DNA of 64,000 nt from assembly GCA_964035545.1 (NCBI GenBank), contig OZ037772.1, forward strand, positions 6,680,889 through 6,744,888, given 5' to 3'. Below the pieces are notes generated by a model, which was not told the origin of the DNA, did not search any database, and saw only the letters and a list, made by a program, of their open reading frames with translations. Positions 5,981 through 63,400 of the stretch are shown here, piece by piece. A program made the position numbers and the translations under genes. Each line of letters begins with the position of its first letter. The stretch's first letter is position 1. The DNA comes from Bugula neritina (Eukaryota > Animalia > Bryozoa).

Positions 5981-6133
5981 AAATGAAACTGACTGCCGTT
6001 TTGTATGTAGGTTACTCCTTCAACTGTTTTCTGCTTCAGTATAGCTACATACCATCTACTGTATCACTCCACTGCTTACTACTCTAGTATAACTATACAC
6101 CAATTACTGTATCACTGATAAGGAAAGGTGAGT
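5981..6133 (+). promoter_or_regulatory. Repeated promoter/non-coding first-exon-like module M1
   Basis: AAATGAAACTGAC, then conserved cagtatagctac...tactgtatcact repeats, then AG|GTGAGT donor at 6128. Homologous to 10 other modules. Function is inferred. Confidence 0.45.
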
Positions 6134-7198
6134 TGAAAACATGAACACGTTTCCTTTTCCATATTTCACTTGACTTCTTTTGAGGTCGAGGTATAGATAT
6201 GCTCTGGTGATTAGCTATTCATAATTTTTCCTACAAATTGTCTATTTATCAATCTTGATGTCATATTTCTGATTTAGTCTTGGTTTGAAATTTTCCTATA
6301 TTATCATATTATAACAATTTCTTTTTATATTAAACTTGGACTGCATATGTTTTTTTTCATTTTAACCAAGTACACTTAAATCAAATTTATGATTCTAATA
6401 TTTTAGTTTAATAAAATTGGGGCAACGTACTGCATCTTTTATCTCATCATTTGCTTGTGAAATGTACTTTTGAATGAAAAACAAAAGTATAATAAATTTT
6501 AGAAAATGCATAAATATTGGCATTCAATAATTCATAATCAATTTATTAGATAAATGTTATTAACATGCTACATATGTAGCAAAACAGTCTATAGCTATCT
6601 GGCTTATAGTATAACTACCTGGTAGAAACTGACGCACTTGTGTCTTATTCAAAAATAGAAGCTGCGCAAACTATTTGCAATTAGTAAGAAAACTGGAAAA
6701 TTATAAGTATTGGAACATTCTTGGCTATATAACTTGAATACAGATCATTAATAGTAATGCAAAAATCAATATCATAATCTAAATATTGCAGAAAGAATTG
6801 AAGATAAACATAGAGAACATATTAAAATGTTGCTTCATAGTTTTTGACACTAACGTAGCTGCAGTATTCAAATACAGACGCCATCATATTGTCTCCCCAA
6901 CATTTGGATGTTTGTGTTTTATAAAATGTTCTACCAACATTCTGTAAGCACATAAAATAAATATTTGCATAATGCTGCATAAGTGTGTAATGCTGCTGGT
7001 ATAAAATGTTGTGAGTCAACATCAATATACTATAAAGTGTAGACATGTTATGTTCTATAGATATCGAGCAAGGTTTTGAGAAACGGTGCCAACAAAGTTT
7101 TTCATCAACAACTCTGTATGACTGTCACTATATATGATGTAGCATTAAATATATGCAAGGTTTTTTAAAGCAGTTGTAAACTATTGTTATTAGAACAC

Positions 7199-9499
7199 TG
7201 GTTTACAACTGTTTTTACAACTATGCAGCATTATGCAAACATTTATTTTATGTGCTTACATTGCTGCACTTTATCTAATAAAAGCTTGCCCATTCGCTTT
7301 TGCACATGACCTACGCATTCAAGTTTCTCAACAACAACATCTGGGCCATAGGGTTGGGCATTACTTACAGCACTATAAGACTTGGAGTCTCTATCCCCTA
7401 AATATTTTACAAACCGTACTCCTCTCTTTTCGACTGACCTCCTGAAAATTCTAACCATACCTACCGGCTCCATACCACTAGCTGAACCCTCATGATTTTT
7501 GACACAACTATGCTCTGGTGGTATACTATCTTTATGACTGGCACATGTAAAACAATAACTAGAGAGAACTTCAGTATCAACTACTTTACCTGGTTTTCCT
7601 ACTGAGTGGGTAATAACAGTAGCTACCCCATTCTTACTACTAAAGCCCCTACGCTGCCAGGTAACATCACAAGATACTGTTATATCACTACTGTTACTCA
7701 TACTAGCAGCTTCCCTGGCAGCCTGGTCCATTGACTTACTAGCTAGCTCCTTAGTAATTTTACCAAGTCGCTCTACATCCTTGGCCCACTCACTAAAAGC
7801 AACAGGTGGGGGCAAACCTAGATGAGCAGAAATAGTTGCAGCAGTACTTCTATGCCCACCTGCCAAGGTTGTACCAAAAGCCAACCGAGTATTCAAAGAA
7901 AACCTATGATCTACATCACGATCACTCATTACACTACTTTCAATAAGAACACCACAAACAGAACAGGTAAAATCAAAAGCTGGTACAATTCCACTATGGC
8001 ATTTTACACTAATTCGCAAGGACATAGCAGGGTGATCTTTACAAGCAATACTACCAGATGACAACCTACCCATAAGTTCTAAAACTAACTTAGTCTGCAC
8101 TATAATACTGTCAGGCTGAGAATTTGCAGAACTAAATAAGAAATTTGAAGTACTTAGCTGATCATTTAGTTTAGCAGAGCTGGCAGTTGCAGCAGGAGTA
8201 GTGCCGGTAACTGTAGGTGTAGCATCACTAGTCAGACTCAAAGAGCTGGAGGCAGTCGGTGGTATAAGTTGATGGTCAGATGCAGCAGACTGGGGCTCCA
8301 ATTGAAAGTCCATAGTACTAACTGAAAAGCTTGTAGATGCACTTAGATGTGCAGTAGAGTTAGTTACATTAGTGTTACTAATAGTAGTAGCGATAACTGG
8401 CGTAGCGATAACTGGCGTAGCGGTGCTGGCAATAGCTAGTAGTAGTAGTAGTAGTAATCGTCATGGGTGGTCTAGTAGTAGGCGTAGTTGTGGGCGTCGT
8501 TGCACTTGCAGGCGTCGTAGCACTTGCAGGCGTCGTAGTAGTAGTACTAGTAGTAATATCAAGTAGTACTGGGTCAGCTTTTCTGTACTGATTTCCTCGA
8601 AACTGCCTTTTTTTAACCTTAGGCATGTTTACTGTGTCTGTAGTATACGTGCTGCTATGTTAGAGACTTATATAACGAGTCGGTACGAATATAAATATTA
8701 TGTAATATTACTAATGTCAAAATAAGTAAATCACGGCACTTCGTAAAACAAAATGTTGATAAATATAAAGTCAAATATGTCTTCTCTTTATTTTCACCGG
8801 TTGTAGAAGATCTAGATGAAGGATTGATGGTAAATTATCAGATTGTTTTGGCAGTTTGGAATATTGCGTGTAGCTTCTTTGTTCGTTTTGGCAAACAGGA
8901 TGTGCGTCACAGATCACGCGATAAGCACAGCCAATAAATGAAGTGAATCACGGGTCACGGGGTCAGGGTAATAAAATTCGACAAAACTATGCCAAATCAA
9001 TTATCTTTGTTTTGCCTCAATGCGCTTACTGAGAGGTGTTATACACGGCCCATTAGTAAAGTAGACTTTTCTGAAACTAATGCTGTACAGTGCAACTGAG
9101 AATGCCGAGTTGAAAACAGTTAACAATGGTGCTAAAGTTAGTGATTATGGCTGCATTTTTTTTGTTTTTCACACCAGTTGCAACAAAGGGGTAACTTTAA
9201 ATACACAATTTTAATAGAAAGAAAAGTAGAATATCAAAAAGAATCACATCACTCGAATCTGGAAATTTTAGAGTTTTTATGCATAGTAAAATCAAAATAT
9301 GGCCAAATTGACCACAATTTCTTAATTTTTTAATCATAGAATGTTGGTGGAAAATTTTATAAAACATCAATTTCCAAATGTTTGGGGAGACAATATGATG
9401 GCGTTTGTATTTAAATACTGCAGCTACATTAGTGTCAAAAACTATGAAGCAACATTTTAATATGTTCTCTATATGCTTCTCTTCAATTCCTTTTTAAAA
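7199..9499 (-). mobile_element. 2.3-kb insertion carrying a truncated DNA transposon plus an inverted host fragment
   Basis: Absent from paralogous sites (~19070, ~45900). Flanked by an 11-bp direct repeat TATTAGAACAC (7188-7198, 9500-9510). Contains the transposase pseudogene. Confidence 0.75.
7243..8626 (-). pseudogene. DDE transposase (Mutator-like PF20700 / Kolobok-type), frameshifted and C-terminally truncated
   Basis: Motifs VSCDVTWQRRGFSSKNG, GKVVDTEVLSSYC, NHEGSASGME, YLGDRDSK and LECVGHVQKRMG in ORF 7243-8313. The basic N-terminus MPKVKKRQFRGNQY lies in a separate frame (8378-8626) across a T/P/A low-complexity tract. Usual DG motifs read DV and DR. Confidence 0.85.
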
Positions 9500-9938
9500 T
9501 ATTAGAACACGTATTTTCACTTTAGCTGACAATGTTGGCAGATATTTTGTTAGAAGCGCTTTCTAATCGTTGTAGTAAAATATGCGTATCACACTTTAAT
9601 ATTTTGTGTGGTTTGATAATTTTATGGTTCAAAAACTATGAGCAATTATTACAAAAATAAACTATAAAAAACAATCATAACACCATATATAAAGCTTTAT
9701 TCAATATTTCAAAAATAAATTTTTTAATATTTATTGGAATAATATTCCAGATTTAAGAAAAATGTAATGCAGCTACTATATTGACAGCATGAAAACTTCT
9801 CAAAGGCAACTAAGAGATTTCTCTGCCGTCCTTCTTCGAACAACCATTTTTTGAGATTAAAAGTAGATACTCAGATATAACAACTTTACAGAAGAACAGA
9901 ATGTCGCTGTAAATTACTTTTGTATTGCGTCTTCTTTT

Positions 9939-11932: not shown

Positions 11933-12083
11933 TGAATGAAACTGAACTAAGAACAGAGGCTATGTTGATAAAAGAAAACTGGCCATACTGCGCTTTGTAA
12001 TTAATTCATTTAGCAGTCAACTGCTTTAAAATAGCCTCGTACAATAACTATACTGTATTTTTGATTTGAAATTTGAGGTGAGT
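11933..12083 (+). promoter_or_regulatory. Proximal promoter/5' UTR exon module of copy B
   Basis: GAATGAAACTGAACT and GATAAAAGAAAACT motifs, AG|GTGAGT donor at 12078, short intron, and AG acceptors at 12257/12262 just before the ATG at 12275. Confidence 0.6.
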
Positions 12084-14025
12084 TTTTACATTATTTTTAG
12101 TTTAAAATAGATTGAGTCGCAGATAACTGAATTACAAGAATTGAAAATTTAATTCTGTTTAATGTAATGGATAGGGCATTTCTGTTGATAGAGTATACAC
12201 AACTAAAACAATAATGAGCGGATTGTGGCGAATAATATGTGTTTTCTGTTATGATAGTTTAGAGAAAAATAAAGATGGCTGCCCAGCAACTAACAGAATG
12301 GTATGAGTGTGGTTATTGTGTCTCTAAGAGAGATGACATGAGAGATCCAAGAGAGCTGCCTTGTCAGCATGTATTCTGTTTGAGTTGTATTCAAGGACAT
12401 TACAGTAAACATAGAACTGTGACCTGCCCTATTAACACTTGTGGGTAAGTACTATGTATATACTGATCGTGTCTTTAAAGTACTTATGTTGTAGTAATAC
12501 TATTAACAAAAGAGTTCTTAGTTGTCTTTGTAAATCTATATGTGTTGACTTTGAACTACTTATTGTAAACTTCATGTGCTTACTCTCAGCTAATTTGCAA
12601 AAGACTACAATCTGTGAACTTGGATGTTTAATAATTTTAGGGTTTTACTCAAAATTAAATTTATAAAGATTAAAATTAAAAAGTACATTTTTACACACAT
12701 GCAAACATATTATTATTGTATGAGATTGAAAAGAGGCTTAAATACTACGAAAAACAGATAAGAATGATTTCATCAGTGTCATAGCAAAATTAATTTGTTT
12801 ATACAGGATTGCTAAATTTATTTGCGTATTTTTTTTTCAAAATCTCAACACTAATCAATTTTAGAGAAGTGTATGAATCAATAGAGTTTGAAAGTCTGCC
12901 AAAGATTACCATAGCAGTATGTTACTGTGTGACATGCAAAGACAAGTTCTGTTCTCATCATCAGCAGGTAAAATTATATTCTCTCTTAGTCTCATATAAA
13001 ATAGGGATGTGAGCAAATAGTATTTAAACTATTTATAGTGCATTTTGATAAACAATTTCAGTTTATAGTTATAATTTTGTAACCATATGGAATGGTCATA
13101 TTGAAAATTGAAGTCTGAAATGCAACAGTGGATGAAAAAGTTCTTATGGTAAAATCATTTACTTTTCATTTCACCTTTATATATCAAAAAGATGCTTGTA
13201 TTACAGAGTTGCTCCTCTTGGTTGTTTTAAAACATGTAACTGACCAATTTCTTCTACTAATTGAATTTATAGAAGCGTTTTTTGTTCGTTATATGGAGAT
13301 AGTATATTAAAATAATGCAAAGTAAAGTTGAGTCTATTAAACAGCACTTGTTACTGCTCATCTCTTCATTTAAATGGTTCACTTATACTTATAATCAGCT
13401 GAAAAGAGCATATATTTTAGATTAAAGTTAATGATAATTTTTAATTATGTGTCTAGCTTTTGAAGTGATGCTTTGAAGTTGGAAGCAGAATACATTGTTG
13501 AAAGAAATTGGTCCGTTTTTGAATGTGCACTCCGTAGTAAGTCATTGACTGCACATGACAAATACACTGTAAATTATACAACAATAAGCTAAATGTCTCA
13601 TGTGATCATATACATAGCGCAGACATTTTTTAAAAATATGCTTCTGCTTTTTCAACAACTTTAATAAAGTCACTTCAAAAAAATACTATCTCACATTCTA
13701 GGTGCATCAGACACTTCATAGTGATTCTCACAAGGTCGTGGGCATTGATGTCTACAAGAGATCACCTGCTAGTTATGACAAACCAATATGTGAACATCAT
13801 CAAGAGGTTCTAGTAAAAGCTTGTAAGAAATGTGACAAACTGATCTGCTTTGAGTGTGAGATAGATGGCTATGACTGCACAAGTGAGTAGCGAAGTGTAC
13901 ACATATAAAACAGATAAATTAAACTTAGAGTATTGTTGGTTGCAATACAAATTGATGCCGCTTATTTAAACAAATGAAATTATACTTGACTTTGCTGTTG
14001 TTTTTTTAAAGAATAAGCTAACATA

Positions 14026-14321
14026 GTGTAATGGATTCTCATCCTCTATATCAGTTCTGAAATAACTGCAATTTGTGGTCCAAGTCTTGGCTCTGCCAAA
14101 TTTTGGAGCTGCCAAATTTCGGACCACAAAAGCTCCTTTGTCTACATGTTCTCTTGTTCTCTGTGTATAAAAGCAGGCGAGTTCCAGTGTAGATTCAGTC
14201 TACTACTAGAGCTCGCCTGGGTAAGTCAAAGTTATTTCTGCTACAATAAAACATTTTGAACTCTACTACCTCAACTTTTCTTGTTCTGCACTAAGTTACA
14301 TTCAACCCACAAGTTTATCAC
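14026..14321 (+). mobile_element. Internally deleted solo LTR (same insertion as 50576-51059)
   Basis: TGTAATGG...TATCACA ends with TATAAAA and AATAAA inside. About 190 bp shorter than the copy in E. Confidence 0.6.
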
Positions 14322-15198
14322 AATATTTATAAAGTTTAAGTTGTGAGATTTTTCCACCTTTTAATGGTTGTTACAGTTATATTACATGTGCTCAGCCAAC
14401 AACAAATAAAAAAAATACAGCTTATATGTAGACTACTGAATGTCAGTCTAGTAACAGTTCCTTCTTCACTGACATTCATATCTGAACATGAGACAAATGG
14501 TCAGTGTGTGGCAGCTCATCACAGACAAGATGGTGACATACTCATAGGTACTGCTAATAGAATACAGTTACTGAGTAGAGATGGTAATGATCTGAGTGAA
14601 TACAGTACAAGTGAGAAGAGAGTAACAGGAGTGATTGAGACTCCTCAGAATGTCTTCATTCTACACAGAAAAGGTGACGTATCTAAGGTAGAGATGTGCT
14701 TAGCTGGTGACATCACAAAGAGACAACAGCTGTTTCAGTTTGATAGAACAAGTGCTATTGCAGCAGTAATGGCAGTCTCTGACAGATATGTTGTGGTGAA
14801 TCATCCAGATACTGGACAGCTGATCATCTATGACTTTATCACTAAACAGACAGAGACTATTCATCCTGATGTGTATCCACTTGGTCTACACTTTTTACCA
14901 GACGGTCATCTGCTAGGAGCTGGTGGATATAAACTGATGAAGTACAAAGTAGAGAATGGAAAGCTGACTACAGTCTGGACATGTGATGGTGTAACAGATG
15001 GATACAGTGTCTGTACAGATTCTAATGGTCTCATCTATGTTTCTGGAAAATTCCTAAAATCAATTTACATCATTTCTTCATCAGGTACTGCTTGTAATAA
15101 ACGCCAATTAAGATATTTGATGTGGGGAATATAAATATAAAACTTGATGAAAGCTTCTGAATGTAGGAGCTGGCTGAATCAAAGTATATATTGAATAT

Positions 15199-17832: not shown

Positions 17833-17990
17833 TGATAAAATGAAACTGACTACCATTTTATATGTAAGTTACTCCTTCAACTGTTTTGTGCTCCAGTATA
17901 GCTACATACCATCTACTGTATCACTCCACTGCTTACTGCTCTAGTATAACTATAAATCAAATACTGTATCTCTGAGTGAGGGAGGCGTGT
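17833..17990 (+). promoter_or_regulatory. Module M2 (donor position reads AG|GCGTGT)
   Basis: GATAAAATGAAACTGAC plus the conserved body. The GTGAG donor is altered. Confidence 0.4.
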
Positions 17991-20631: not shown

Positions 20632-20843
<212 letters not shown>

Positions 20844-20954
20844 TTTTATGCATACTCAGTTTAGATGCATATTTAACCTAAGGAACTCCCACATTTGAAA
20901 TTCCTTTGTAATCAGAGGTTATGTTGCAGCACACTATATTTACATAATTATGAT

Positions 20955-21137
20955 AAGAACAAAGGCTATAAAACTGACAAAATGAAACTTCCTGTTACTC
21001 CCCCTGCCCTTCGCACACTTAACTGCTTACCGCTCTATTATAACCATCTACTAACTACCCACTGCATCAGTTCACTACTTACTGCTCCAGTATAACCACC
21101 TACTATAGCTACTGCGACATTGCATACAAAGGTGAGT
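20955..21137 (+). promoter_or_regulatory. Module M3
   Basis: aagaacaaaggctat...AAAATGAAACTT, ctccagtataac body, AG|GTGAGT donor at 21132. Confidence 0.45.
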
Positions 21138-21393: not shown

Positions 21394-21394
<1 letters not shown>

Positions 21395-23639
21395 ATACCA
21401 TATTCTGCAGCTTACACTCAGAGAGATTTAGATATATTGCTAACCAGTTAATATATTTAACTTTGTTGTTTTCTTACAACATAACAAGTAATATAGCTAA
21501 GATACCGGGAAATTATTTATAGATACTAAAAAGCAGTGTTTGAAAAACTGGTGACCCTATCCACTGCTAATGTTGAAAGGTCAACAGCAATGTAGGTTCT
21601 GTATATGTATATGACTGTGACCTATTCTAATTTCAGAGTGCATTGTGATATAATCACGTTACAAAATACAAAGGCCATAAAATGATTGGGAGAATGAAAT
21701 GAAACTTCATTCTGTTTACTGCTCTACTTGCTACTCTGCTAGTATAACTACATCCTAACTACAGCAGCACATGACTACTTCCCATAACTCTAGTATTGTA
21801 ATGGCATAGGGAATGTATGCCCTTCATTCATCTGGCACATAAACACTTACATGCAAAGCTTAAGTGTATTATAGTCATATAGGTATTATAACATTCCCTT
21901 CGTAATGCTCGGGCTAACATTGTAAAATACCGCACTCTCTGCAGTAGTGGCGCAGGGTTCCCACCGTCGGAACATACCGGCCAATCCAAAGACAGCCTCT
22001 CCTTATAAGGCGGGCCTCACAGACGTCCTGACTCATTTTACGTTTTTAGACGTCTTATAGAGCTCACTACTGTATTGAATCTCTGTGTTATATATTTCTT
22101 CATATTGATGTAGTCTTTTATAATTAGTGTTTCAAATATATCTATTCATTCAACCATAACAACTACTCGGTTCTCTCCAGCAAACCTCGAATAAAGGTTA
22201 TGCTGTAGCAGTGCAAACACCGAATATAATCCACACTGGTAGTAATCCGCAAAACTAGAAAAGTGGTGGCAGCGGTGAGATAATTATGTGTAGATACAAC
22301 TGCGACTACTCTGTATGGAAAGATGATTATCGATGGCTAAAGCTGGACAATAAAGTGCCAAAAGAGAAGCTGTCAGTGGAGAAACAGAACCACTGTTGGA
22401 GCCCGCAAAACTGACAAAGACTGCAAGCCCTTTTGAAGGTGAGCCCAAAACTCTTGAGAGTCAGAATAATCCGATACTGCGGGTGAGGAGGCAGATAGCG
22501 AAATATCTGGTGAGAGACACTTTCTGAAAGCCCCCGTCTCTAATGTTAGTGAAGCTGTAGAGCAATTTCTTTAAGAGTTTAGCAACTTGATGACTGTCTC
22601 TAAGTGACCGCCTAGGGCTGTACTCTTACAACTGTGGTTGAGAATCGCCGTCCACAGCATTTTTGCTGCCCTATGAGCCCAATTTGGCCTATCAGCTATT
22701 GACACTAGGGTTTGCTGTCAAGGGTTGTGACGCAAACCGTGCACACTCTTGCAAAAGCAGGCAGCCACGGTTAAACTGTTGGCACAAACCGCACATAGCG
22801 AATTGTCACCGACAAACCGGGAGCGTTACAACTCTGATGCCACTGTGCAATCATTGGGCGACTTAAAACTCCACCACCAATTCCTGGCAAAAAGAGGCAA
22901 AGCAAGGTGAGGGAAAGTGAGGTTTATTTGCAGGCTAAACAGTTGCACAGGAGACGTATGAGCTCTCATCAGATTGGGACGAAATTACGGGGCCCACCCG
23001 AGTCTGAACTGACCACTCACGTAGCCGTAACTGCAAGCCCTTCTTTAGCTGCTGAACCAGCTTACATGGTGGAGGTAGCAAAATAATTAGTGGTGGGACT
23101 TGCACAGTTCTAGAAGGCTGGCCTGCTCAGAGACTTAAGAGATCAAAGCAGACTTTGCCTTCGGATGGGTTACTGCATGTTGAGAATGAGGTAGTTGCAG
23201 ACGTCTTTGCAGGGAGTGTCTGCAAGTCTTGCAACAGGAGTTAAGCCACCTCAGCCCAAAGCTTCATTTGCCAGTCGCAGGCCAGAGGTAAATCACTGGT
23301 TAAGGGAAAGCTATTTAAAATCCCCAAGGATGTCACGAGCGCCCCCAATCAAATGGCAGGTGCCAAGGAGGACTGGCAAGCCGTATGACAGGCCTGTTGC
23401 TCCACTCAACCTGGCCACGTCAGAAAAATTTTAACGGACTGCAAAAAGAGTGGTCTGATAAAGAGGTCAGGCAGGACCATAAGTTTGCAAATGTGCCTCT
23501 GCAACCTCTGAGACCATCTCGTAGCCGTTGGACGCAGGCCTCGCCCAAACTCAAGGCTCCAGAAGTGTTACATTTAGAGGTCGAGAGCGCTCAGAGAATT
23601 AAAGTACAACTCTATGGCAGCAGCCATTTCTTGCTAGAC

Positions 23640-27060: not shown

Positions 27061-27439
27061 GTGCCTAGGTTAACTATATGCATTGCAGTGAATTTATAAT
27101 TAGTGTTTAAAATAAATCTATTCATTCAACCATTACAACAACTCGGTTCTCTCTAACAAACCTTCTATAAAGGTTATGCTCCAGTAGTGGAAACACAAAA
27201 TATAATCCACACTGGTAGGAGCCCGCAAAACTACCACAGTATAACTAAGCACTAACTGCTGCATCACTAAAAGAAAAGGTGAGAAAAGACCAATTTATTA
27301 TGCTATAGTTTACCCTGGCTACAAGTTAGAGCTACAAACAAGTTTTAGCAATTTTTTTTTTTTCTGGCCTGTATTTTGTATGATAATTATATTAAAACGT
27401 AAACATGCAGATTGCTAAGTATTTGATAAGAAAAGTTAT

Positions 27440-27618
27440 AAAATAGATAAAATGAAACTGGTTGTCACTCCCCGTGCCATTTGTTCACTTAGCTACGCGC
27501 TACTCCAGTATAACTATCTACTGTAGCTATACTGCACCACTTCACTACTTACTGCTCTATAGCACATGTAGCCACCTAATAGCTACTCTATCATTTCATA
27601 TAACAAAGTTGGGTAAAG
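27440..27618 (+). promoter_or_regulatory. Module M5, closest module to the ATG exon of copy C
   Basis: GATAAAATGAAACTGG, ctccagtataactatctactg body, GG|GTAAAG donor at ~27613. Confidence 0.45.
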
Positions 27619-28290
27619 ATCATATATTTTTCTTTACTATTTTTATATTATAGGATACTAATTAATAGAGTAGAATAGCAGATCTAATTTTGGTGGTTGC
27701 ATATTAACTATAATAAAAACATTGCCTCCTTCATAAGTTTGCTGCTAGAAATGTATACAATTTATAGGTCAATTGGTAGAGAAAATATTATGCTTTGTGT
27801 TGTGCGATGAACTTGAAAAATTTTGTAGCCTTTATAAATTGTCTTAGTTTATCACCTATTTCAACATTGCATCGGGTTTTAGGAATGGTGAATCAGTGAG
27901 TTCTTTTTCTTTTGTGGCATTCTTCTGTAGATTAATCTGGAGATTACATCTGCTTGTAAAATTGTAAATATCTGTCTGCTTCCACTATAGCAAGTGCATG
28001 GGTGGTTATTTGTGTATCTGTGTAAACATAAAATTTGTTTGCACAATTTGTACAGACCATACCAAAACCATCATTCTTATACTATTATAGAAAAATGAGG
28101 TTCCTTTTCCCTCTATATCTCATTTTTTATGCTCTTTTTGTTTCTCTCTTTCTCTCTCTTTCTCTCTCTCTCTCTCTTTCTCTTTCTCTGAATGTTGTTT
28201 ATTTTTCTCCTTGTGCCTGGCAAAAACTATATATTTTGCCTCAGAATTTTCCCCAACAAAATAAAAATTGTTTTATATTGCAAATTCAAG

Positions 28291-31200
28291 ATGGCTGCCC
28301 AGCAACTACCAGAATGGTATGAGTGTGGTTATTGTGTCTCTAGAAGGGATGGCATGAGAGATCCAAGAGAGCTGTCTTGTCAGCATGTATTCTGTTTGAG
28401 TTGTATTCAAGGACATTATAGTAAACATAAAACTGTGACATGCCCTACTTGTGGGTGAGTAGAAATTATCCAGCGTGTACTAGATTGATATTTTCTAAAT
28501 TCATCCAAGCAATTATTTTAAATTGTCTAAAATATCTTGAAGCTATTATAAATATGCAAGATACTGCACAAGCAAATCTTGAGTATTACCAGTTACATGT
28601 AGTGTGATCTCGAAACATGTAATGCAGTAAAAGCTTTACAATAATGATGGTGCTATGCTTTTCATATTTATTGTTAATAAAAAATATTCTGCACTTTTGA
28701 AGCCATGCTAATAGCATTAATTTCTATGATTTTATTGATGATGGTGGTCATGTATTCAAGTCCTGCCTAGAAGTTGTTGGTATATTTTTTGGTATTTTTC
28801 ACATAATGGAATGTCATGAATTATACTGGTAACATCATGGGCTGTAATGAAATTATTGCAGAGAAGTGTATGACTCACTGCAGTTTGAAGAATTACCGAA
28901 GGTTGTCATAGCAACTGGTGATTCTAGTACTCTGTACTGTACAGCTCATGGATGTCAAGGTCAAATGGCTACATGCTACTGTGTGAAGTGTGAAGTTATG
29001 TTCTGTACTCAACATCAACAGGTATATTATACCTCAACTACTGCATGTCCAAATTCCAAGGCCAGGAATCAGTACAATATTGTGTTACTTGTAAATATCT
29101 GTTTTATTTTTAACATCAACAGGTAAAATAATGCACGAGTAAATTTATAATAAATTTCTTAGATATTACACTCCAAAGCTATACACATGTACGCACACAC
29201 ACACACACGCACGCACGCGCACGCACACGCACGCACACGCACGCACACGCACGCACACGCACGCACACGCACACACACACACATACACACTTAAACACTT
29301 ACACTTACGCACACACACACCCACACCTAGTATATGAATTATACATGGTTGCTACACTTATGCACGCACACACATGCACACACACATGCATACACACATG
29401 CACACACACATGCATACACACATGCACACACACATGCATACACAGATGAACACACACACACGCACACACAGGCACACACACGCACACACACGCACACACA
29501 CGCACACACACGCACACACACGCACACACACGCACACACTTACACACACGTAGTATATGAATTATACACGATTGCTACACACATGCACACACACATGCAC
29601 ACACACATGCACACACACACACACACATACACACTTACACACGCACACACTTACACACTTACACACACACACCTAGTATATGAATTATACACGATTGCTA
29701 CACACATGCACACACACATGCACACACACTCATGCAGACATACAAATGCCCAAAGGCATGTATGAGGAGACATTTGCCTGTGAATGCAAGTATATGTATA
29801 TGTGCATTTGCATGTGCAAGTGTGTCTCAACTTTCTTTTACATTGTTTTATTTTCAAACTTTTGGATACTGCTTCAAATAAAAATATTGGAGTTATATGG
29901 TTATCTATTATGTTAGATTCCACTGAAATTTGATTTTAATTACAGGCACACAAAGCAATGTATGGTGAGTCTCACAAGGTAGTGGACATTGATGTCTACA
30001 AGAGATCACCTGCCAGCTACAATAAACCAACATGTGAAAATCATCAAGAAGTTTTAGTGAGAGCTTGTAAGAAATGTGACAAACTGATCTGCTTTGAGTG
30101 TGAGATTGACGGATATGACTGCACAGGTATGTAAAATAGTGTTCACATATATAACCGAAAAGTAAAATTGAAAGTATTGCTTCATGGTTGCAATACAGAG
30201 TACAATTTCACTGAATAAAAATAACAAAATCGCTATATTATAGTTTTTGCAGTTTATCTAAATAATATAAAATCATTATAAAAATAAAGTTGCAAGATTT
30301 TTTGTCATCTACTGATCTGTAGATGAACATTAGGTGTGTATTTTAGCTAAAAACAAATTGTGTTAGCAATGCAGTGTGTCTTTTGATTTAACAGTCATTT
30401 TGTGCCAACTTTCTATGAGCTCAGCAGTATAGTTGTGTAGATTTACAAGACTATTTGACAATAAGGTTTAATAAGGTTTAATAAGCCCTTTAGCCAAACT
30501 GATCTTTTATAATTTACTTTACAGTTATACTTAAATGAATAATCGATTACTTGATGTTTGCAAGTGAGTGATGAAAATTTATACTAGACACTTTCCTTTT
30601 ACGTTTTGCTGGGTGTCAAAATACTAAAAATGGAAATGCAGTATATATAGGGTGATGGGCTTTATTTGCTGTTTGTATGTGAATTTTGGCATTCAGTTTC
30701 TGATTGATTACTACATTCGGCATAATATTTTTTTTATAGATCAAGAAAAACATGATTTTAAATCTCTCACATCACTGAAAGAAGAGGTAAACACCTACTT
30801 TTCTACACAGCTGAAAGTAATTGCTGAAAAGATTACCAAGATATGTACTTTGGACAAGAAAGTTTGGAATGATCTTGACGATCAAGAACAAAAGTGTTCC
30901 GTTGTTATAAGAGAGATAGAGACAGTTAGAGATGAGATGGTGAGTGGTTAGTCAAAGTTTCTTTTTGTGATAGATTTTTAAATTACCAACATTTCTATAC
31001 ATGTACGTATCCTTAAATGATTAAACTTTAGAAAAAAATTTAGGTCAACATTAACAATGTGTAATAAATTTAATATCACTATCTTTCGAATTCATATATA
31101 TTGTCATTAGGTCGTTAAGATCCGTAATGGCTATATGCAGTTTCACACAAGTTTGGCTCACTAAACAAAGTGATAAATGAAGTATTTGTGATGGCATCTT

Positions 31201-35993: not shown

Positions 35994-36039
<46 letters not shown>

Positions 36040-36389: not shown

Positions 36390-36550
<161 letters not shown>

Positions 36551-36802
36551 CTTAGAAAATAGATGTTTAATAACTTTAGGGTTTTACTCAAAATTAAATT
36601 TATAAAGAATAAAAATAAAAAGTACATTTTTACACACATGCAAACATATTATTGTATGAGATTGGAAAGTGGCCTAAATACTACCCAAAACAGATGAGAT
36701 TTATTTCATCAGTGACATAGCAAAATTAATTTTTTTTATACAAGATCGTTAAATTTATTTGCTCAACTTTTTTTTTGAAATCTCCCCACTAATGAACTTT
36801 AG

Positions 36803-44685: not shown

Positions 44686-44838
44686 AAATGAAACTGACTG
44701 CCGTTTTGTATGTAGGTTACTCCTTCAACTGTTTTGTGCTCCAGTATAGCTACATACCATCTACTGTATCACTCCACTGCTTACAACTTTAGTATAACTA
44801 TACACCAATTACTGTATCACTGATAAGGAAAGGTGAGT
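44686..44838 (+). promoter_or_regulatory. Module M7 (paralog of M1)
   Basis: AAATGAAACTGAC, conserved body, AG|GTGAGT donor at 44833. Confidence 0.45.
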
Positions 44839-47892: not shown

Positions 47893-48043
47893 GAATGAAA
47901 CATGAACTAAGAACAGAGGCTATGTTGATAAAAGAAAACTGGCCATACTGCGCTTTGTAATTAATTCATTTAACAGTCAACTGCTTTAAAATAGCCTCGT
48001 ACAATAACTATACTGTATTTTTGATTTGAAATTTGAGGTGAGT
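47893..48043 (+). promoter_or_regulatory. Proximal promoter/5' UTR exon module of copy E
   Basis: As for B: donor AG|GTGAGT at 48038 and acceptor just before the ATG at 48235. Confidence 0.6.
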
Positions 48044-48234: not shown

Positions 48235-51200
48235 ATGGCTGCCCAGGAACTACCAGAATGGTATGAGTGTGGTTATTGTATCTCTAAGAGGGATGACATG
48301 AGAGATCCAAGAGAGCTGCCTTGTCAGCATGTATTCTGTTTGAGTTGTATTCAAGGACATTACAGTAAACATAGAACTGTGACCTGCCCTATTAACACTT
48401 GTGGGTAAGTACTATGTATATACTGATCGTGTCTTTAAAGTACTTATGTTGTAGTAATACTATTAACAAAAGAGTTCTTAGTTGTCTTTGTAAATCTATG
48501 TGTGTTGACTTTGAACTACTTATTGTAAACTTCATGTGCTTACTCTCAGCTAATTTGCAAAAGACTACAATCTGTGAACTTGAATGTTTAATAACTTTAG
48601 GGTTTTACTCGAAATTAAATTTATAAAAATTATAATTAAAAAGTACATTTTTACACACATGCAAATATATTATTATTGTATGAGATTGAAAGGAGGCTTA
48701 AATACTACGAAAAACAGATAAGAATGATTTCATCAGTGTCATAGCAAAATTAATTTGTTTATACAGGATTGCTAAATTTATTTGCGAATTTTTTTTTCAA
48801 AATCTCAACACTTATCAATTTTAGAGAAGTGTATGAATCAATAGAGTTTGAAAGTCTGCCAAAGATTACCATAGCATCTGGTGACTCTAATACTCTGTTC
48901 TGTACAGCTCGTGAATGTCAAGGTCAAATAGCAGTGTCTTACTGTGTGACATGCAAAGACAAGTTCTGTTCTCATCATCAGCAGGTAAAATTATATTCTC
49001 TCTTAGTCTCATATAAAATAGGGATGTGAGCAAATAGTATTTAAACTATTTATAGTGCATTTTTATAAACAATTTGAGTTTATAGTTATAATTTTGTAAC
49101 CATATGGAATGGTCATATTGTAGTAGATTTGTGGGTTATAGAATGAAATCAGGCAGAGAACATAACTCCTTGCTATAAAAGAGACAAGAGAGGTGTGACT
49201 TCGTGTGTGTATAGTGATCTTTATTATAACAAAGATGTATACAGCTCAGACTCCAGCGCTGAAGTGCTGAGCTGGGCAAAAAACGCGTGCTTTTATACTA
49301 ACAAAAGACGGGGATTTGGGCCTTTCAGAACATTCCATCGACAGCGGAGCCAATATTCGGCAGGGGTACCAACATTCGTCGTGTCGGTTACCGACATTCG
49401 TCGTGTCGGTTACCGACACTGGACATGTCGGTAACCGACATTCGGTCTGCCTGTAGCCACCTGCCGATATCGGTACATCTGTCGGTTTACAAGTATAAAG
49501 AAAAGGATCAACCAAGAGTATTGTAATAAGTTATTGTTGTAAGAATAAAGAAAAGGGTAAACCATAAGTATTATAATAACTGAGACTGTGTCTGTAATAC
49601 TAGTTATGGGAATGGGGCAAAGGGGGATAACTTGATATCTAGATATTTACTACAATATTAAAAATTGAAGTCTGAAATGCAACAGTGGATGAAAAAGTTC
49701 TTTTGGTAAAATCATTTACTTTTAATTTCACCTTTATATATTTAAAGGATGCTTGTATTACAGAGTTGCTCCTCTTGGTTGTTTTAAAACATGTAACTGA
49801 CCAATTTCTTCTACTAACTGAATTTATAGAAGCGTTTTTTTTGTTCGTTATATGTAGATAGTATCTTAAAACAATGCAAGGTAAAGTTGAGTCTATTAAA
49901 CAGCACTTGTTACTGCTCATCTCTTCATTTAAATGGTTCACTTATACTTATAATCAGCTGAAAAGAGCATATACTTTAGATTAAAGTTATTGTTAATTTT
50001 TAATTATGTGTCTAGCTTTTGAAGTGATGCTTTGAAGTTGGAAGCAGAATACATTGTTGAAAGAAATTGGTCCATTTTTGAATGTGCACTCCGTAGTAAG
50101 TCATTGACTGCACATGACAAATACACTGTAAATTATACAACAAGCTAAATGTCTCATGTGATCATATATATAGCGCAGACATTTTTTAGAAATATGCTTC
50201 TGCTTTTTCAACAACTTTAATAAAGTCACTTCAAAAAAATCCTATCTCACATTCTAGGGGCATCAGACACTTCATAGTGATTCTCACAAGGTCGTGGGCA
50301 TTGATGTCTACAAGAGATCACCTGCTAGTTATGACAAACCAATATGTGAACATCATCAAGATATTCTTGTGAGAGCTTGCAAGAAATGTGGCAAACTGAT
50401 CTGCTTTGAGTGTGAGATAGATGGCTATGACTGCACAAGTGAGTAGCAAAGTTTACACACGTAAAACAGATAAATTAAACTGAAAGTATTGTTGGTTGCA
50501 ATACAAATTGATGCCGCTTATAATGAAATTATACTTGACTTTGCTGTTGTTTTTTTAAAGAATAAGCTAACATAGTGTAATGGATTCTCATCCTCTATTA
50601 GTTCTGAAATAACTGCGCTTATTGTAATTACTGTTGCGTATCGTTTTGAATTCTGTAATTGTAGTAAGCTAGCTTGCTAATGCCCAATTATTGTGATTAC
50701 TGTTAAAGCTTTCAACATAATGTAATTTTGCTGAAATATGCATTCCGGGGTTATTTTCTTTTGCGTTGCTATTTTATCGTTTTGCATTAATACTGATACT
50801 GGACATTTGTGGTCCGAGTTTCGGCTCTGGCAAATTTTGGAGCTGCCAAATTTCGGACCACAAAAGATCTTTTGTCTACATGTTATTTTGTTCTCTGTGT
50901 ATAAAAGCAGGCGAGTTCCAGTGTAGAATCAGTCTACTACTTATAGAGCTCGCCTGGGTAAGTCAAAGTTATTTCTGCTACAATAAAACATTTTGAACTC
51001 TTCTACCTCAACTTTTCTTGTTCTGCACTAAGTTACATTCAACCCACAAGTTTATCACAATATTTATAAAGTTTAAGTTGTGAGATTTTTCCACCTTTTA
51101 ATGGTTGTTACAGTTATATTACATGTGCTCAGCCAACAACAAATAAAAAAAATACAGCTTATATTTCGATTAAGCAACAATTTCATTCCAAATTCCTATG

Positions 51201-56993: not shown

Positions 56994-57003
56994 GGGAATT
57001 CCC
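56994..57003. promoter_or_regulatory. Palindromic NF-kB-type site GGGAATTCCC (also 59089-59098, 61172-61181)
   Basis: Exact match to the GGGRNNYYCC consensus, unchanged in all three repeat units, ~340 bp upstream of each module. Binding is untested. Confidence 0.5.
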
Positions 57004-57339
57004 CATTTAGACTAAGTAACAGCTTTTCCAAATCAGTTTTATTGTCGTAGATGATTTTCCAATAAGAACTTACCAAGATTGTAAGAGCATAGGCTACAAT
57101 GCTATTATAAAAATAAAACTGCTTGATCTTTTCTTGACTACTTTCAAATGAATGCCTGCTCAATAAATCAATATTATGTTTTATAGTATGAGATTCTAAG
57201 CCAGCTTTATTATGGTCAAAGCTAGACTTGATTAAAATATAGATTTTGGCACATTGTGGAGTGAAGCATTCAATAGAGTCAAAGGCTAGGTAAATATTGA
57301 AAAAGAAAGGAGTCTACTGAAAGATAAAGGGTATACGTT

Positions 57340-57498
57340 GATAAAAGGAAACTGACCACCATTTTATATGTAAGTTACTCCTTCAACTGTTTTCTGCTCC
57401 AGTATAGCTACATACCATCTACTGTATCACTCCAGTGCTTATACCACTCTAGTATAACCAAACACAAATTACTGTACCATTGAGTGAGAGAGGTGAGT
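57340..57498 (+). promoter_or_regulatory. Module M9 (M10 at 59436-59593, M11 at 61517-61693)
   Basis: GATAAAA..AAACTGAC, conserved body, AG|GTGAG donor in each unit. Confidence 0.45.
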
Positions 57499-60400
57499 TA
57501 AAAACCTTGACATGTTTTCTTTTTGATATTCTACTTTAGTTCTTATGAAATTGAGCTAAAGATATGCTCTGGTGACTATAGCTATTTTTCTTTTTTTCCT
57601 ATAACCTGCCTATTGTAATTTTGTTTTCTAATTTATTGCTTGGATATTGTATATAACTAACAGCTTTCAAACTATTTGACCTACATTCAATAGTGCTGGA
57701 AGCTTGTTACTCCAATATATAGAGAATTCTCATAAGACATAAAATGACTAAATTGTGAGACTTTATTGTTGATATGTTTACACTTTGAATACTAACTCTT
57801 TTATAATCTATAATCTATGCTATTGCATACAACAAGATTCGTTATTAATGAATATTCAATAATCAGCAAGACTGGCATGGAAATTTTTTTAAAACAGTAA
57901 CTAAGCGGTAAAAAGTGGCAGGTTACTAAAACATGGCATGATAAAGCGAGATACTATTTATGAAATATTACACAAAAGACATTCAGTATTCATTATTATT
58001 ATGCAATGTACAATTGAGTTTATGACCACCTATCTGAATAACTGTATAATTATATCATGAGAGCATAACTGCTATAATTTTGGAGGTTAAATATAATTAA
58101 CAACATTTAAACTGGTTGACCTACATTCAATGGTGCTCTAGATTATATTTTACTACAAAGTTCCTATAAAACATATCATTTTTAAATTATGAGATGTTAT
58201 AATTATTGATTATAAGTTTTTTTTCACACAATCCGTACCAATTAGGTAAAATCTATTTTATGGAAACTAATGCGGTATGTACATGTATGTGTGCATGATG
58301 GTGTAAAACCATTCTTAAAGCAATTATTATTAAGCAATTGATAGCATATAACAATAGGGTTAAAATGTGGTGTTCTATAACATTGATCATCAAATGCTTC
58401 TTGAATATAAAATATTATTGCTGATCACAGCTAAGAGACGAAAACCATATAAAGCTGTTTTGATATAAGAGGTTTATATTGATCAATAGAAAGTTATACA
58501 TGAATCAATAAGTATATATACATATTGAGAACAGTTAGTATAGCCTGAGTTCTGCCAATTATACTAACAAACCTTTCTTATTATCATAATGGATGTTATT
58601 GAGAATCGATTATATACAAATAACATATACTCTAACGAACAGAAATGAACCTGGCTTTAACTAAACTAATCTTTTCTATCAATTGACATATTGTATTGTA
58701 TTTTATATAATATAAGTTGAGATGCACGTTGTAGTAAAGTAAATTGATAAGGCCTCAATAGTAAATAGCTATATAGTGCATGCAGTTTAAACTTTAAACA
58801 ACCCACTAACTAAGCAGAGTATAGTCCATACATACAGGCACATACTATATATAAAATTATTAAATTATAAAAGCCACACCAAGTGAGCATTTAACAAACT
58901 TTGTTGGAGTAACACTTGTTTGAAATCACAGCCTAAATAATTATGATTAAAAAACATTATGCTAGTACTAATGATAGTCTCCACGCACATTGTAACGCTC
59001 ACAATAGTCTATATATACATGTGTTTGCTATGAGAAAAAATAGTTCAATGCAGTTCCTTTAAGAAAAAACAATGCTAAATTGCAAGCAGGGAATTCCCCA
59101 TTTAGACTAAGTAACATCTTTTTCAAATCAATTTTATTGTCGTTGATGATTTTCCAATGAGAACCTAACAATATTGCAAGAGCAAAGGCTGCAATGCTAT
59201 TACAAAAAGAAACTGCTTGATTTCCCCTCGAGTCCTACTAATGAATGCCTGCTCAATAAATCAATATTATGTTTCACAGCATGAGATTCTAAGCCAGTTT
59301 TGTTGTGATCAAAGCTAGGCTTGATCAAAAGATAAAGTTAGGCATATTGCATTATGAAGTATTCAATAAAGTCAAAGGCTACGTAATTATTGAGAAACAA
59401 AAAAGTCTACTGAAAGATAAAGGGTTATATACATTGATAAAACAAAACTGACTACCATTTCATATGTAAGTTACTCTTTCAGCTGTTTTCCGCTCCAGTA
59501 TAGCTACATACCATCTACTCTATCACTCCACTACTTACTACTCTAGTATAACTAAGCACCAATTACTGTATCACTGAGAGGAGAGAGGTGAGCTAAAACC
59601 TTAACATGTTTTCTTTTCCATATTCTACTTGACTTCTTTTGAGGTCGAGGTATAATAGATATGCTCTGGTGATTAGCTATTCATAATTTTTTTCCTATAA
59701 CCTGCCTATTGTAATTTTGTTTTCTAATTCAGTGCTTGGATATTGTATATAACTAACAGGTTTCAAACTAGTTGACCTATATTCAATAGTGCTGGGAGTT
59801 TGTTACTCCAATATATAGAAAATTCTCATAAGACATAAAATGACTAAATTGTGAGACTTTATTGTTTATATGTTTACACTTTGAATACTAACTCTTTTAT
59901 AATCTATTGCATACAACAAGATTTGTTATTAATGAATATTCAATAATCAGCAAGACTGGCATGGAAGTTTTTTTAAAACAGTAACTAAGCGGTAAAAAGT
60001 GGCAGGTTACTAAAACATGGCATGATAAAGCGAGATACTATTTATGAAATATTACACAAAAGACATTCAGTATTTATTAATATTATGCAATGTACAATTG
60101 AGTTTATGACCTCCTATCTGAATAACTGCGTATAATTATAACATGAGAACATAACTGATATAATTTTGGAGGTTATATATAATTAACAACATTCAAACTG
60201 GTTGACCTACAATCAATGGTGCTCTAGATTATATTTTACTACAAAGTTCCTATAAAACATATAATTTTTAAATTATGAGATGTTATAATTATTGATTATA
60301 AGTTTTTTTCCATACAATCCAGACCAATTAGGTAAAATATTTTTTATGGAAACTAATGTGGTATGTACATGTATGTGTGCATGATGGTGTAAAAGCATTC

Positions 60401-63400
60401 CTATTAAGCGATTGATATCATATAACAATAGGGTTAAAACATGATGTTCTATATTTATCACCACATGCTTATTAGATTTGCAATATTATTATTGATCACA
60501 GCTAGGAGACGAGAAGCATATAAAGCTGTTTTGATATAAGAGGTTAATATTGATCAATAGAAAGTTATACATGAATCAATAAGTATATATACACATTGAG
60601 AACAGTTAGTATAGCCTGAGTCCTGTTAATTATACCAACAAACCTTTCTTATTATCATAATGGATGTTATTGAGAAACGTTTATATACAAATAACATATA
60701 CTCTAATGAAAAGAAATGAAACTGCCATTAACTTGACCTTTTTCTTTTCTGTCAATCGACATATTGTATTGTATTTTACATAATATAGGTTGACATGCGT
60801 GTTGTAATGAAGTAAGTTGATAAAGCTTCAATAGCTAGTACAGGTTCAACCTTAAACGACCCACTAACTTACCAGAGTATACAGTCCTTACATGCAGACA
60901 CATACTATGTATAAAATTATTAAATTGTAAAAGCCACACCTAGTGAGAAATTTATTAACTTAGTTGGAGTAACAATTGTAGGCATACAAACTTTAGTTTT
61001 AAGCCACAGTTAGAATAATTATGATTACAAAAATTATGCAACAGTATCTACCAACAAAGGTCTCCAGGCTCATTGTAACACTCACAATAGACTATATTAA
61101 TGTATTTGCTATGACAAAAAGTAATTCAATACAGTTCCTTTCAGAAAAAAAACAATGCTAAATGGCAAGCAGGGAATTCCCTATTTAGACTAAGTAACAG
61201 CTTTTCCAAATCAGTTTTATTGTCGTAGGTGATTTTCCAATAAGAACTTACCAATATTGTAAGAGCATAGGCTACAATGCTATTACAAAAATGAAACTGC
61301 TTGCTTTTTTCTTGACCACTTTCAAATGAATGCCTGCTCAATAAATCAATATTATGTTTTATAGCATGAGATTCTAAGCCAGCTTTATTATGATCAAAGC
61401 TAGACTTGATTAAAATATAGATTTTGGCATATTGTGGGGTGAAGCATTCAATAGAGTCAGAGGCTATGTAAATATTGTGAAACAAAAGAGCCTACTGAAA
61501 GATAAAAGCTTAGTTTGATAAAATGAAACTGACTGCCATTTCATGCAATGTAGGCCTACAATAAGTGCAAGTTACTCCTTCAGCTGTTTTCCGCTCCAGT
61601 ATAGCTATATACCATCTACTGTATCACTCCATTGCTTCGTACTCTAGTATAACTGTACACCAATTACTGTATCATTGAGTGAGAGAGGTGAGTTAAAAAC
61701 CTTAACATGTTTTCTTTTCCATATTCTACTTTAGTTCTTATGAAATTGAGCTAAAGATAGGCTCTGGTGACTATGGCTATTTATATTTTTTTTCCTATAA
61801 CCTGCCTATTGTAATTTTGTTTTCTAATTTATTGCTTGGAGGTTATATATAATTAACAACATTCCAACTGGTTGACCTACATTCAATGGTGCTCTAGATT
61901 ATATTTTACTACAAAGTTCCTATAATACCTATATATAATTTCTAAATTGTGAGATGTTATAATTGTTGATTATAAGTTTTTTTCCACACAATCCAGACCA
62001 AGGTAAAATATTTTTTATGGAAACTAATGCCGTATGTACATGTATGTGTGCATGATGGTGTAAAACCATTCTTAAAGCAGTTATTATTAAGCAATTGATA
62101 GCATATAACAATAGGGTTAAAATGTGGTGTTCTACATTGATCATTACATGCTTATTGAATATAAAATATTATTGTGGATCACAGCTAGGAGACGAGAGCC
62201 ATATTATAAAGCTGTTTTGATATAAGAGGTTAATATTGATCAGTAGAAAGTTACACATGAATCACTGAGTATATATACAGATTGAGAACAGTTAGAATAG
62301 CCTGAGTCCTACCAATTATACCAACAAACCTTTCCAATTATAATAATGGATGTTATTGAGAAATGACTATATACAAATAACATATACTCTAATGAAAAGA
62401 AATGAAACTGCCATTAACTAAACCTTTTCCTTTTCTGTCAATTGACATATTGTATTGTATTTGATATAATATTAGTCGACATGAGTCTTGTAATGAAGTA
62501 ACTTGATAAAGGTTCAGCAGTCAATAGCTATTACATGCAGGCTCAAATTGCTCTGGTAGGGTAAATTAACATTGCTTGTTTAGCACGCTTTTGTGTGGCA
62601 TTGCGTATGCTAAACTAATGGCCAGTTTTGCAGTAGCTTCACCATTACCTTCAAAAGAATGCAAATATCATCTAATTATTGTAAGCTTTTCAAGTTAATT
62701 TGTCCTGCAGCTGACACGAGTAAAACTATTATCGTATTTCATTTTCATGATATACATAGCTCTAATTCTGAAAAAGCACTAGATAGAGTTGAAATTAAAC
62801 TTGATCTATTCATTGCTAAAGCATTACAGCTATGAATAATATATACATGATTACCTGAGTGATACCACAATAATAACTTGCAAATATAGTTTAAATGTAA
62901 TAAAAAAACAATCTGGCGAAAGATTATATATGAGAAGCTGTTTTTGTAATAATTCCCTGCTCTAGGGTGAATTAGAAAAGTTGTTTTAGAGCAAAATTTT
63001 TGTATAAATTAATTGAATAAAATCATTGGGAGTTTTATGAAGGTCTATTTGTGTATGAGTATGTAACAACTCAAGTTCTTAGATTTTATGTAATTTGTGA
63101 TGCAAGGTTGCAAATAAGAATCCTATTTTAATGAAACTTAGACATATGTAAGCAATAAAGATAATGAAAAAAAACTATTATAGTTGCTAATTAGCCAATA
63201 TATTACTTGCATATGGTACAAATAATTGCGTGCATGCATGTTCAGTTTATTAGCATTGGTTAGGTATAATTGGAATATATATTATATTGATTTGATGGAG
63301 ATTGGAGAAAATCATTATACGTTCTGTTATGTAATGTTCTTTTACTACAATACAACCACTTTTTTACATTGGTTTGGTAATTACTTTGTAAATCATTTAT

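Follow-up and report, generated by a model that had tools for sequence, protein, structure and literature searches.

The genes in and around the 64-kb stretch of Bugula neritina DNA analysed here (the window) that carry a short repeated cassette belong to a private subfamily with about 30 members of RING/B-box/propeller (TRIM-NHL-like) type, and the locus raises the question of what this cassette does and why it often stands more than once in front of the same gene. A sequence-only reading of the window had listed eleven copies, each described as an IRF motif followed by a non-coding exon and a splice donor, and had proposed that every gene can start from several stacked, inducible promoters that splice to a single ATG exon.

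A profile search with nhmmer identifies 12 cassette copies in the window, the eleven listed sites among them and every one on the gene strand (Table 1), so that the repeated, gene-oriented cassette is real. Homology of the copies was confirmed in three ways, by alignment, by blastn and by the nhmmer profile. Eight copies, with donors at 6128, 17985, 21132, 27613, 44833, 57493, 59588 and 61688, are clear homologues (E 1e-41 to 1e-62). Of the remaining three listed sites, those with donors at 12078 and 48038 represent a diverged version that has a single sub-repeat and shares 95% identity between the two copies (E about 1e-8), and the homology of the copy with donor 27279 is restricted to its 3' half; the listing had also overlooked a truncated copy. 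The number of cassettes per gene is as stated earlier, with two each for genes B and E and four for gene C, to which the truncated copy has to be added. Gene D has neither a cassette nor a RING exon, and the trio of copies at 57-62 kb lies upstream of a gene beyond the window edge. Two short words mark the repeat: the window has 10 instances of AAATGAAACT, always on the plus strand (0.64 expected), and 8 of AGGTGAGT, likewise always on the plus strand (1.42 expected), with seven of the eight being cassette ends.

Table 1. Cassette copies and ATG/RING exons in the window, with E values from the nhmmer profile.
Feature	Position	Strand	E value	Details
Cassette type I, distal	5981..6133	+	1.5e-60	Motif 5981-5990; donor AG/GTGAGT 6126-6133; 6.1 kb before gene B ATG, within 3-kb block 4181-7192 after previous gene
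Cassette, diverged, one sub-repeat, gene B proximal	11934..12083	+	1.6e-8	Two IRF-like motifs, 11934-11947 and 11967-11980; donor 12076-12083; donor to ATG exon 197 bp
Gene B ATG/RING exon, 57 codons	12275..12445	+		AG immediately 5' of ATG
Cassette type I, gene C distal	17838..17990	+	1.1e-60	Donor changed to GC
Cassette type II, gene C distal	20980..21137	+	2.2e-45	Intact motif and donor
Truncated cassette	21665..21796	+	2.7e-8	Motif and first part, without donor
Cassette type IV	27091..27286	+	2.5e-5	Decayed motif; TATAAAGG 27166-27173; donor AG/GTGAGA at 27279
Cassette type III, nearest gene C ATG	27450..27625	+	5.3e-41	About 660 bp before ATG; old GT gone; possible shifted donor GG/GTAAAG 4 nt downstream
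Gene C ATG/RING exon	28291..28455	+		AG preceding ATG examined
Cassette type I, gene E distal	44686..44838	+	7.4e-58	3.4 kb before ATG
Cassette, diverged, gene E proximal	47909..48043	+	5.7e-8	Donor 197 bp before ATG
Gene E ATG/RING exon	48235..48405	+		AG preceding ATG examined
Cassette type I, unit 1 of 2.1-kb tandem repeat	57344..57498	+	5.6e-62	Next ATG exon 16.4 kb downstream, outside window
Cassette type I, unit 2 of 2.1-kb tandem repeat	59440..59593	+		Motif variant AAAACAAAACT; donor GTGAGC
Cassette type I, unit 3 of 2.1-kb tandem repeat	61521..61693	+	2.2e-61	20-nt insertion 3' of motif

The position of the cassette relative to the genes is equally regular. Within 250 kb, the profile yields 36 cassettes, all 36 on the gene strand, and each of the 13 RING/ATG exons in this region is preceded by a cassette at a distance of 170-1060 bp, in line with the earlier claim that the element lies upstream of, and co-oriented with, TRIM genes. 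Across the whole array, 22 of 30 ATG exons have a cassette less than 1.1 kb upstream among the matches listed (150 candidates scored); the eight genes without one among these matches are minus-strand genes. Homology between the ATG exons of different genes begins at the ATG itself, and an AG directly precedes the ATG in 11 of the 13 exons of the 250-kb region.

Each unit measures approximately 170 bp and consists of the motif, followed over some 135-155 nt by a sub-repeat of about 45 nt in one or two copies, and then a GT donor, which terminates most copies. The sequence is poor in G (10% G, 29.5% C), and across the diverged subtypes the conserved island spans the interval from motif to donor, with the bases preceding the donor varying among copies. 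Cassettes differ by indels of 2, 4, 14 and 20 nt and keep no conserved frame; as these lengths are not multiples of three, the cassette is non-coding, and the description of it as a non-coding, donor-terminated unit is thereby upheld. An upstream open reading frame starting at an ATG in the motif was also considered and rejected, since its frame is disrupted by the indels and its peptides show no conservation. A structured or small RNA was ruled out as well: the cassette has no match in Rfam, it folds more weakly than shuffled sequences (z = +1.8), and a consensus fold is predicted to contain just 8 pairs (-0.58 kcal/mol), so that no conserved structure was found. Position and anatomy together make it well supported that the cassette is a promoter with a 5' leader exon.

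How this promoter is used is best accounted for, in our judgement, by a scheme that we hold to be probable, in which the cassette would be the proximal promoter and untranslated first exon of the private TRIM subfamily, the copy nearest each ATG exon would be the working one, and the extras would be duplicates. Transcription would start shortly 3' of the motif, and splicing would remove a 0.2-1 kb intron and join the leader to the RING exon, whose acceptor would directly abut its ATG. Unequal exchange within the array would have copied the promoter/leader region, either as 2.1-kb tandem units, which appear to carry about 140 bp of intron 1 along with it, or as 3-kb blocks. Upstream copies that are intact may act as alternative first exons, whereas copies with a GC donor, truncated copies and those lacking the motif would be decaying by-products.

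The original proposal goes further and holds that most upstream copies are in regular use, as stacked inducible promoters whose non-coding first exons all join one ATG exon. Duplication accounts for the extra copies, in 3-kb segments or 2.1-kb tandem units, and the flanks were duplicated together with the cassette. Roughly half of the distal copies retain both the motif and a canonical donor, as regular use would predict; within the 3-kb and 2.1-kb groups, however, cassette and flanks are about equally conserved, so that the youth of the duplicates can explain why upstream copies are still present. Three copies, those at 17985, 21665 and 27279, are damaged, the first of them by the GC in place of GT that had already been recognised as an altered donor. 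A single cassette is enough for 3 of the 13 genes in the 250 kb, and 12-16 kb separate the 57-62 kb trio from the nearest downstream ATG exon, in front of which stand two further cassettes. Pfam matches were found neither in the GC-rich stretch at 22-26 kb nor in the ORFs between this trio and the next gene. That each gene starts from several promoters is a conjecture, and we consider regular use of most upstream copies unlikely.

Evidence for use of a second leader comes from the type IV cassettes. At least five diverged genes are preceded by two cassettes, with type IV upstream of type II or type III, and diverged type IV copies show 84-89% conservation in the donor region against 30-50% in the flanks, a pattern suggestive of constraint on a second leader exon. 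With its donor kept across diverged genes, some second leaders of this subtype may indeed be used. Counting against our preferred scheme, the proximal cassettes are in no better condition than those further upstream: the original GT has disappeared from four of them, a GC occupies the donor position in one, and in one the donor region is missing. The possible shifted donor of the copy nearest gene C is a variant that also precedes three other genes.

Among 19 diverged copies, no 10-mer is better conserved than AAATGAAACT (96%), which resembles the IRF/ISRE half-site type. GAAA is the half-site bound by IRFs and GAAACT its extended form, and an ISRE comprises two GAAA half-sites with 2-nt spacing (GAAANNGAAA, extended ...GAAACT) (PMC6954429). 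The cassette motif combines one canonical half-site, GAAACT on the 3' side, with a degenerate 5' half that reads TAAA or CAAA in most copies, and the exact full ISRE, GAAANNGAAACT, occurs in none of the cassettes in the 250 kb. The genome has two IRF-domain loci (C3:5.606 Mb and C1:11.78 Mb), at both of which the two Pfam IRF halves score above the cut-off, and oyster IRFs were shown to activate ISRE reporters (PMC5557890). What had been termed the IRF core therefore stands as the most conserved, IRF-type element of the cassette in a genome that has IRF genes, but as a half-site with a degenerate partner rather than as a full ISRE. Judged by its sequence, the motif most probably serves as a binding site for an IRF-family factor, and such binding would make the array inducible.

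Alternatively, the conserved block could be a TATA-like box (ATAAAA) or an element of the initiator region, in which case the promoter and leader would be constitutive and not IRF-inducible. Most copies read GATAAAATG, an A/T-rich sequence of TATA-like character, and the adjacent ATAAAA could itself be such a box; two type IV copies have a TATA-like string some 20 nt upstream of the motif, which would place the motif near +1, and the degeneracy of the 5' half-site would also fit this reading. Conservation is distributed the other way, however, with the TGAAACT bases at 90% or more and the ATA part only at 60-80%, and GAAACT is a canonical extended IRF half-site (PMC6954429). Searching for a TATA box or initiator conserved across the cassette subtypes, we found no position that is kept. 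A constitutive TATA or initiator element is, to our mind, a doubtful account of the motif.

Genome-wide, a model search in which 150 candidates were scored gives 42 strong matches, all on one chromosome-scale contig (C8), and 40 of them fall within the 0.6-Mb array of the TRIM subfamily at C8 6.62-7.20 Mb, the other two lying 1.7 Mb away. A BLAST search of the cassette against the genome returns 18 matches, all 18 on the same contig. The array contains four orientation zones, and throughout them the strand of the cassette agrees with that of the gene in 100% of cases. The cassette is hence linked to TRIM loci and not dispersed, and a transposon was rejected. Other TRIM arrays of the genome, including one of about 100 copies at C8 0-4.7 Mb, gave no cassette in the model search. 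Four cassette-like matches lie at C8 4.953-4.962 Mb; the family exon was not found near them. A mobile or dispersed repeat (SINE or MITE), or a small-RNA or spliced-leader gene, that lies near TRIM genes by chance is a scarcely credible reading. In its favour, the unit is short, multi-copy and ends in a GT donor, and tandem arrays in other parts of the genome weakly match its sub-repeats (E 1e-5 to 1e-2). Against it stand the confinement and strand agreement of the strong matches, the co-duplicated flanks, the lack of an Rfam family or structure and a pre-donor sequence that varies, unlike a spliced leader.

Gene searches were run exon by exon. A scan of metagenome contigs with the RING exon recovered only distant RING relatives, none with a cassette; these are at most 47% identical across most of the exon, and reach up to 65% on short fragments only. 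The protein homologue search with the same exon returned just two short ORFs of genomic type.

If the promoter and leader assignment is confirmed, a defined motif and promoter would offer a handle on the switching of a fast-evolving, probably immune, TRIM array in a phylum with, to our knowledge, almost no functional immunology, and an IRF-type site as the best-kept element in about 30 bryozoan TRIM promoters would argue for an ancient IRF-to-TRIM link that vertebrates share. The array also illustrates how unequal exchange multiplies promoters along with genes. It seems quite improbable to us that the cassette banks actually serve to regulate a hypervariable TRIM receptor array by providing several inducible starts per gene or promoter choice among them. 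Were this nevertheless the case, either arrangement would adjust the dose of the receptor genes or their selection from cell to cell, the array would represent a non-coding counterpart, in an invertebrate, of variable-first-exon promoter choice, and there would be evidence that an IRF-to-TRIM regulatory link predates vertebrates.

The structural class to which the cassette belongs, a duplicated promoter with its leader exon, is ordinary. NR3C1, CYP19A1 and BDNF each have several alternative untranslated first exons with their own promoters, spliced to a common ATG-bearing exon. The Bugula units resemble these in being same-strand, donor-ended promoter and non-coding exon units before one ATG exon, but differ in being near-identical recent duplicates instead of distinct tissue-specific promoters, and in that their use is presumed. 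Spliced-leader RNA genes likewise have a short non-coding exon, a GT donor and tandem repetition; the cassette exon, in contrast, is variable at the donor, is without Rfam match or structure and exists in few copies in one gene array. Clustered protocadherin and UGT1A loci, the former invoked as a loose analogy in the sequence-only reading, share tandem promoter and first exon units with a conserved element and a donor before shared exons. There, however, coding variable exons give protein diversity, and on this point the analogy fails: the cassette lacks a conserved frame, the ATG lies in the next exon, and diversity in Bugula resides in separate whole genes. We know of no interferon in this bryozoan. 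With the vertebrate TRIM genes induced by interferon or IRFs (TRIM5, TRIM21, TRIM22 and the fish finTRIMs), which have ISREs near the start site, the array has in common that its TRIMs are tandemly expanded, that a GAAACT-type half-site is the most conserved element and that the genome encodes IRFs, while its motif, as read from the DNA alone, pairs a canonical with a degenerate half-site in place of the full element.

The recurring module on the gene strand, a cassette of about 170 bp that combines a candidate promoter with an untranslated leader exon and comprises a motif, one or more sub-repeats of about 45 nt and a GT donor, was recovered in agreement by profile, blastn and alignment. Together, alignment, blastn and an nhmmer profile identify 12 copies in the window, named here by the position of their donor. 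All eleven copies of the sequence-only reading are amongst them; the total, however, rises by one truncated copy absent from that list, and copy 27279 is only partial. The donor at 17985 is altered as that reading had stated, with GC replacing GT, while at 27613 the old GT is gone and GTAAAG is found 4 nt downstream. The diverged copies 12078 and 48038 are located 197 bp upstream of the ATG exons of genes B and E, respectively. The motif AAATGAAACT occurs 10 times in the window, always on the plus strand (0.64 expected), and AGGTGAGT occurs eight times, likewise all plus, seven of them at cassette ends.

Features of the window, with cassettes given by donor position
Feature	Position	Strand	Remark
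Gene A	1680-2366	+	last exon alone inside window
Gene B	12275	+	ATG
Gene C	28291	+	ATG
Gene D	41283-41996	+	last exon; RING exon not detectable
Gene D region	34477-36768		B-box and propeller exons; no detectable RING/ATG exon, no upstream cassette
Gene E	48235	+	ATG
Full-length cassettes (n=8)	6128, 17985, 21132, 27613, 44833, 57493, 59588, 61688	+	
Diverged cassettes	12078, 48038	+	single sub-repeat
Partial cassette	27279	+	profile match restricted to 3' half
Truncated cassette	21665-21796	+	
Paralogous 3-kb blocks	4181-7192, 16051-19071, 42920-45907		hold 6128, 17985, 44833
2.1-kb tandem repeat	55655-62000		holds 57493, 59588, 61688
Mutator-like transposase	7243-8313	-	intact 356-codon ORF; PF20700, E 4e-49
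GC-rich stretch	22000-26000		G+C 40-47% vs about 31% around
Long low-complexity tandem repeats	20500-20935, 29173-29751, 36262-36600		8-14 nt periods; the last a simple repeat at the gene D break
Stand-alone AAATGAAACT motifs	60714, 61289, 62400	+	no leader exon; inside 2.1-kb units

Indels of 2, 4, 14 and 20 nt between copies mark the cassette as non-coding. It is poor in G (10%, with 29.5% C; local background 17% each), and across the diverged subtypes conservation forms an island that begins at the motif and ends shortly after the donor. In a set of 19 copies with pairwise identities below 90%, AAATGAAACT is the 10-mer with the highest conservation (96%). No TATA box or initiator conserved across the subtypes could be placed, no conserved RNA structure was found in the cassette, which folds more weakly than shuffled controls, and an Rfam search of it returned no family match.

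The assembly used, in which the window occupies C8:6680889-6744888, comprises 216,009,554 bases with a G+C content of about 31%; the published Bugula neritina assembly has 9 pseudomolecules and 216.00 Mb (PMC11480708). The TRIM-type genes of the window, whose exons were searched singly without joining them into a spliced protein, form a tandem series on the plus strand, each with a RING/ATG exon, two B-box exons, coiled-coil exons and a final beta-propeller exon of about 230 codons. Gene D is probably a 5'-truncated copy. Comparison of gene B (13890-14435) with gene E (50446-53722) shows that about 2.6 kb holding the coiled-coil exons of gene E (about 51536-51766 and 52651-72) is absent from gene B, which is therefore a deletion variant or pseudogene. 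The GC-rich stretch between genes B and C, whose sole feature is a 145-codon ORF with a weak aspartyl-protease match (E 0.006), may be a decayed retroelement. Two of the three low-complexity repeats adjoin cassettes or the gene D breakpoint.

To place the cassette relative to the genes, the window and 20 further pieces were assembled into 250 kb (C8 6,620,001-6,870,000). In this stretch the 36 profile matches share the strand of the genes without exception, and each of the 13 RING/ATG exons is preceded by a cassette at a distance of 170-1060 bp. By gene interval, the cassettes number 2, 1, 1, 2, 2, 5, 0 (gene D), 2, 5, 5, 1, 5, 2 and 3. Across the whole array of about 30 such genes (C8 6.62-7.20 Mb), a listed cassette is found less than 1.1 kb upstream of 22 of 30 ATG exons (18/18 on the plus and 4/12 on the minus strand); the eight exons without one are all on the minus strand, where 150 candidates were scored. 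Homology between the genes' ATG exons starts at the ATG, directly preceded by AG in 11 of the 13 exons and with AG at -7 in the other two, as would be expected if the coding exon begins at an acceptor.

Genome-wide BLAST of the cassette, the check proposed in the sequence-only reading, gave 18 matches, all in the TRIM array on C8 (6.667-7.092 Mb). When 17 copies were used to build a covariance model from sequence alone, the genome search with it returned 95 matches at E up to 0.01, of which 57 lie in C8 6.62-7.20 Mb (40 with E below 1e-10), their strand following the gene strand in every orientation zone. A dispersed repeat is rejected, as BLAST matches are confined to the C8 array and strands follow the genes. 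Four further matches lie at C8 4.953-4.962 Mb (C8:4953248-4961619, plus strand), 1.7 Mb from the array, two of them strong, with E of 5e-28 and 6e-22; none of the TRIM subfamily's RING, B-box or propeller exons was found around them. The rest, 34 in number, score weakly (E 1e-5 to 1e-2); they cover the sub-repeat part only and lie elsewhere, in apparent tandem arrays. Those at C8 13.12 and 13.22 Mb, C6 0.06 and 14.6 Mb, C3 0.51 Mb and C4 23.66 Mb are closely spaced and minisatellite-like, and the 45-nt sub-repeat of the leader is possibly a relative of some tandem-repeat family. The model search gave no match in the sister sub-clusters at C8 9.3 Mb and C7 8.1 Mb or in the roughly 100-copy TRIM array at C8 0-4.7 Mb, and a scan of metagenome contigs yielded distant relatives only, none with a cassette.

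Self-comparison of the window places three cassettes in paralogous 3-kb blocks, each following the preceding gene's last exon, and three in a 2.1-kb tandem repeat, a spacing that is also found ahead of gene A and at other places in the array. Distal copies are homologous to a proximal one along the cassette and for about 140 bp into the intron behind it, beyond which the homology is lost. The extra copies are therefore duplicates of the promoter/leader region. The gene E paralogous interval lacks the sequence corresponding to 7196-9500, so the Mutator-like element was inserted, between the distal and proximal cassettes of gene B and later than the cassette duplication.

We take the copy nearest to each gene as its putative working promoter. 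That upstream copies are in regular use, as a general stack of alternative promoters per gene, is unproven. Motif and donor are both kept in about half of the distal copies, and at least five diverged genes share an order in which a type IV cassette precedes one of type II or III, the last 25 nt and donor of type IV being 84-89% conserved against 30-50% in the flanks; from this pattern, a second leader exon for part of the TRIM subfamily is plausible. In the 3-kb and 2.1-kb groups, however, cassette and flanks are conserved to about the same degree, so that retention of the cassette needs no selection; copies 17985, 21665 and 27279 are damaged, three genes have a single cassette, and a distance of 12-16 kb separates the trio at 57-62 kb from the next ATG exon (window coordinate 73931), an exon with its own pair of cassettes.

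All six stand-alone motifs in the 250 kb lie on the plus (gene) strand; two of the three in the window lie in a longer GAAA-rich context. The IRF half-site is GAAA, the extended half-site GAAACT and the ISRE GAAANNGAAA (PMC6954429). The downstream half of the cassette motif is a canonical extended half-site and the upstream half a degenerate one (TAAA or CAAA); exact GAAANNGAAACT is absent from all cassettes in the 250 kb. Reading the ATAAAA next to the half-site as TATA-like is a live rival. The genome carries two loci with both IRF-domain halves above the Pfam cut-off, and IRFs of the oyster, another lophotrochozoan, activate mammalian ISRE reporters (PMC5557890); together with the half-site, these make a putative IRF site the leading reading of the motif.
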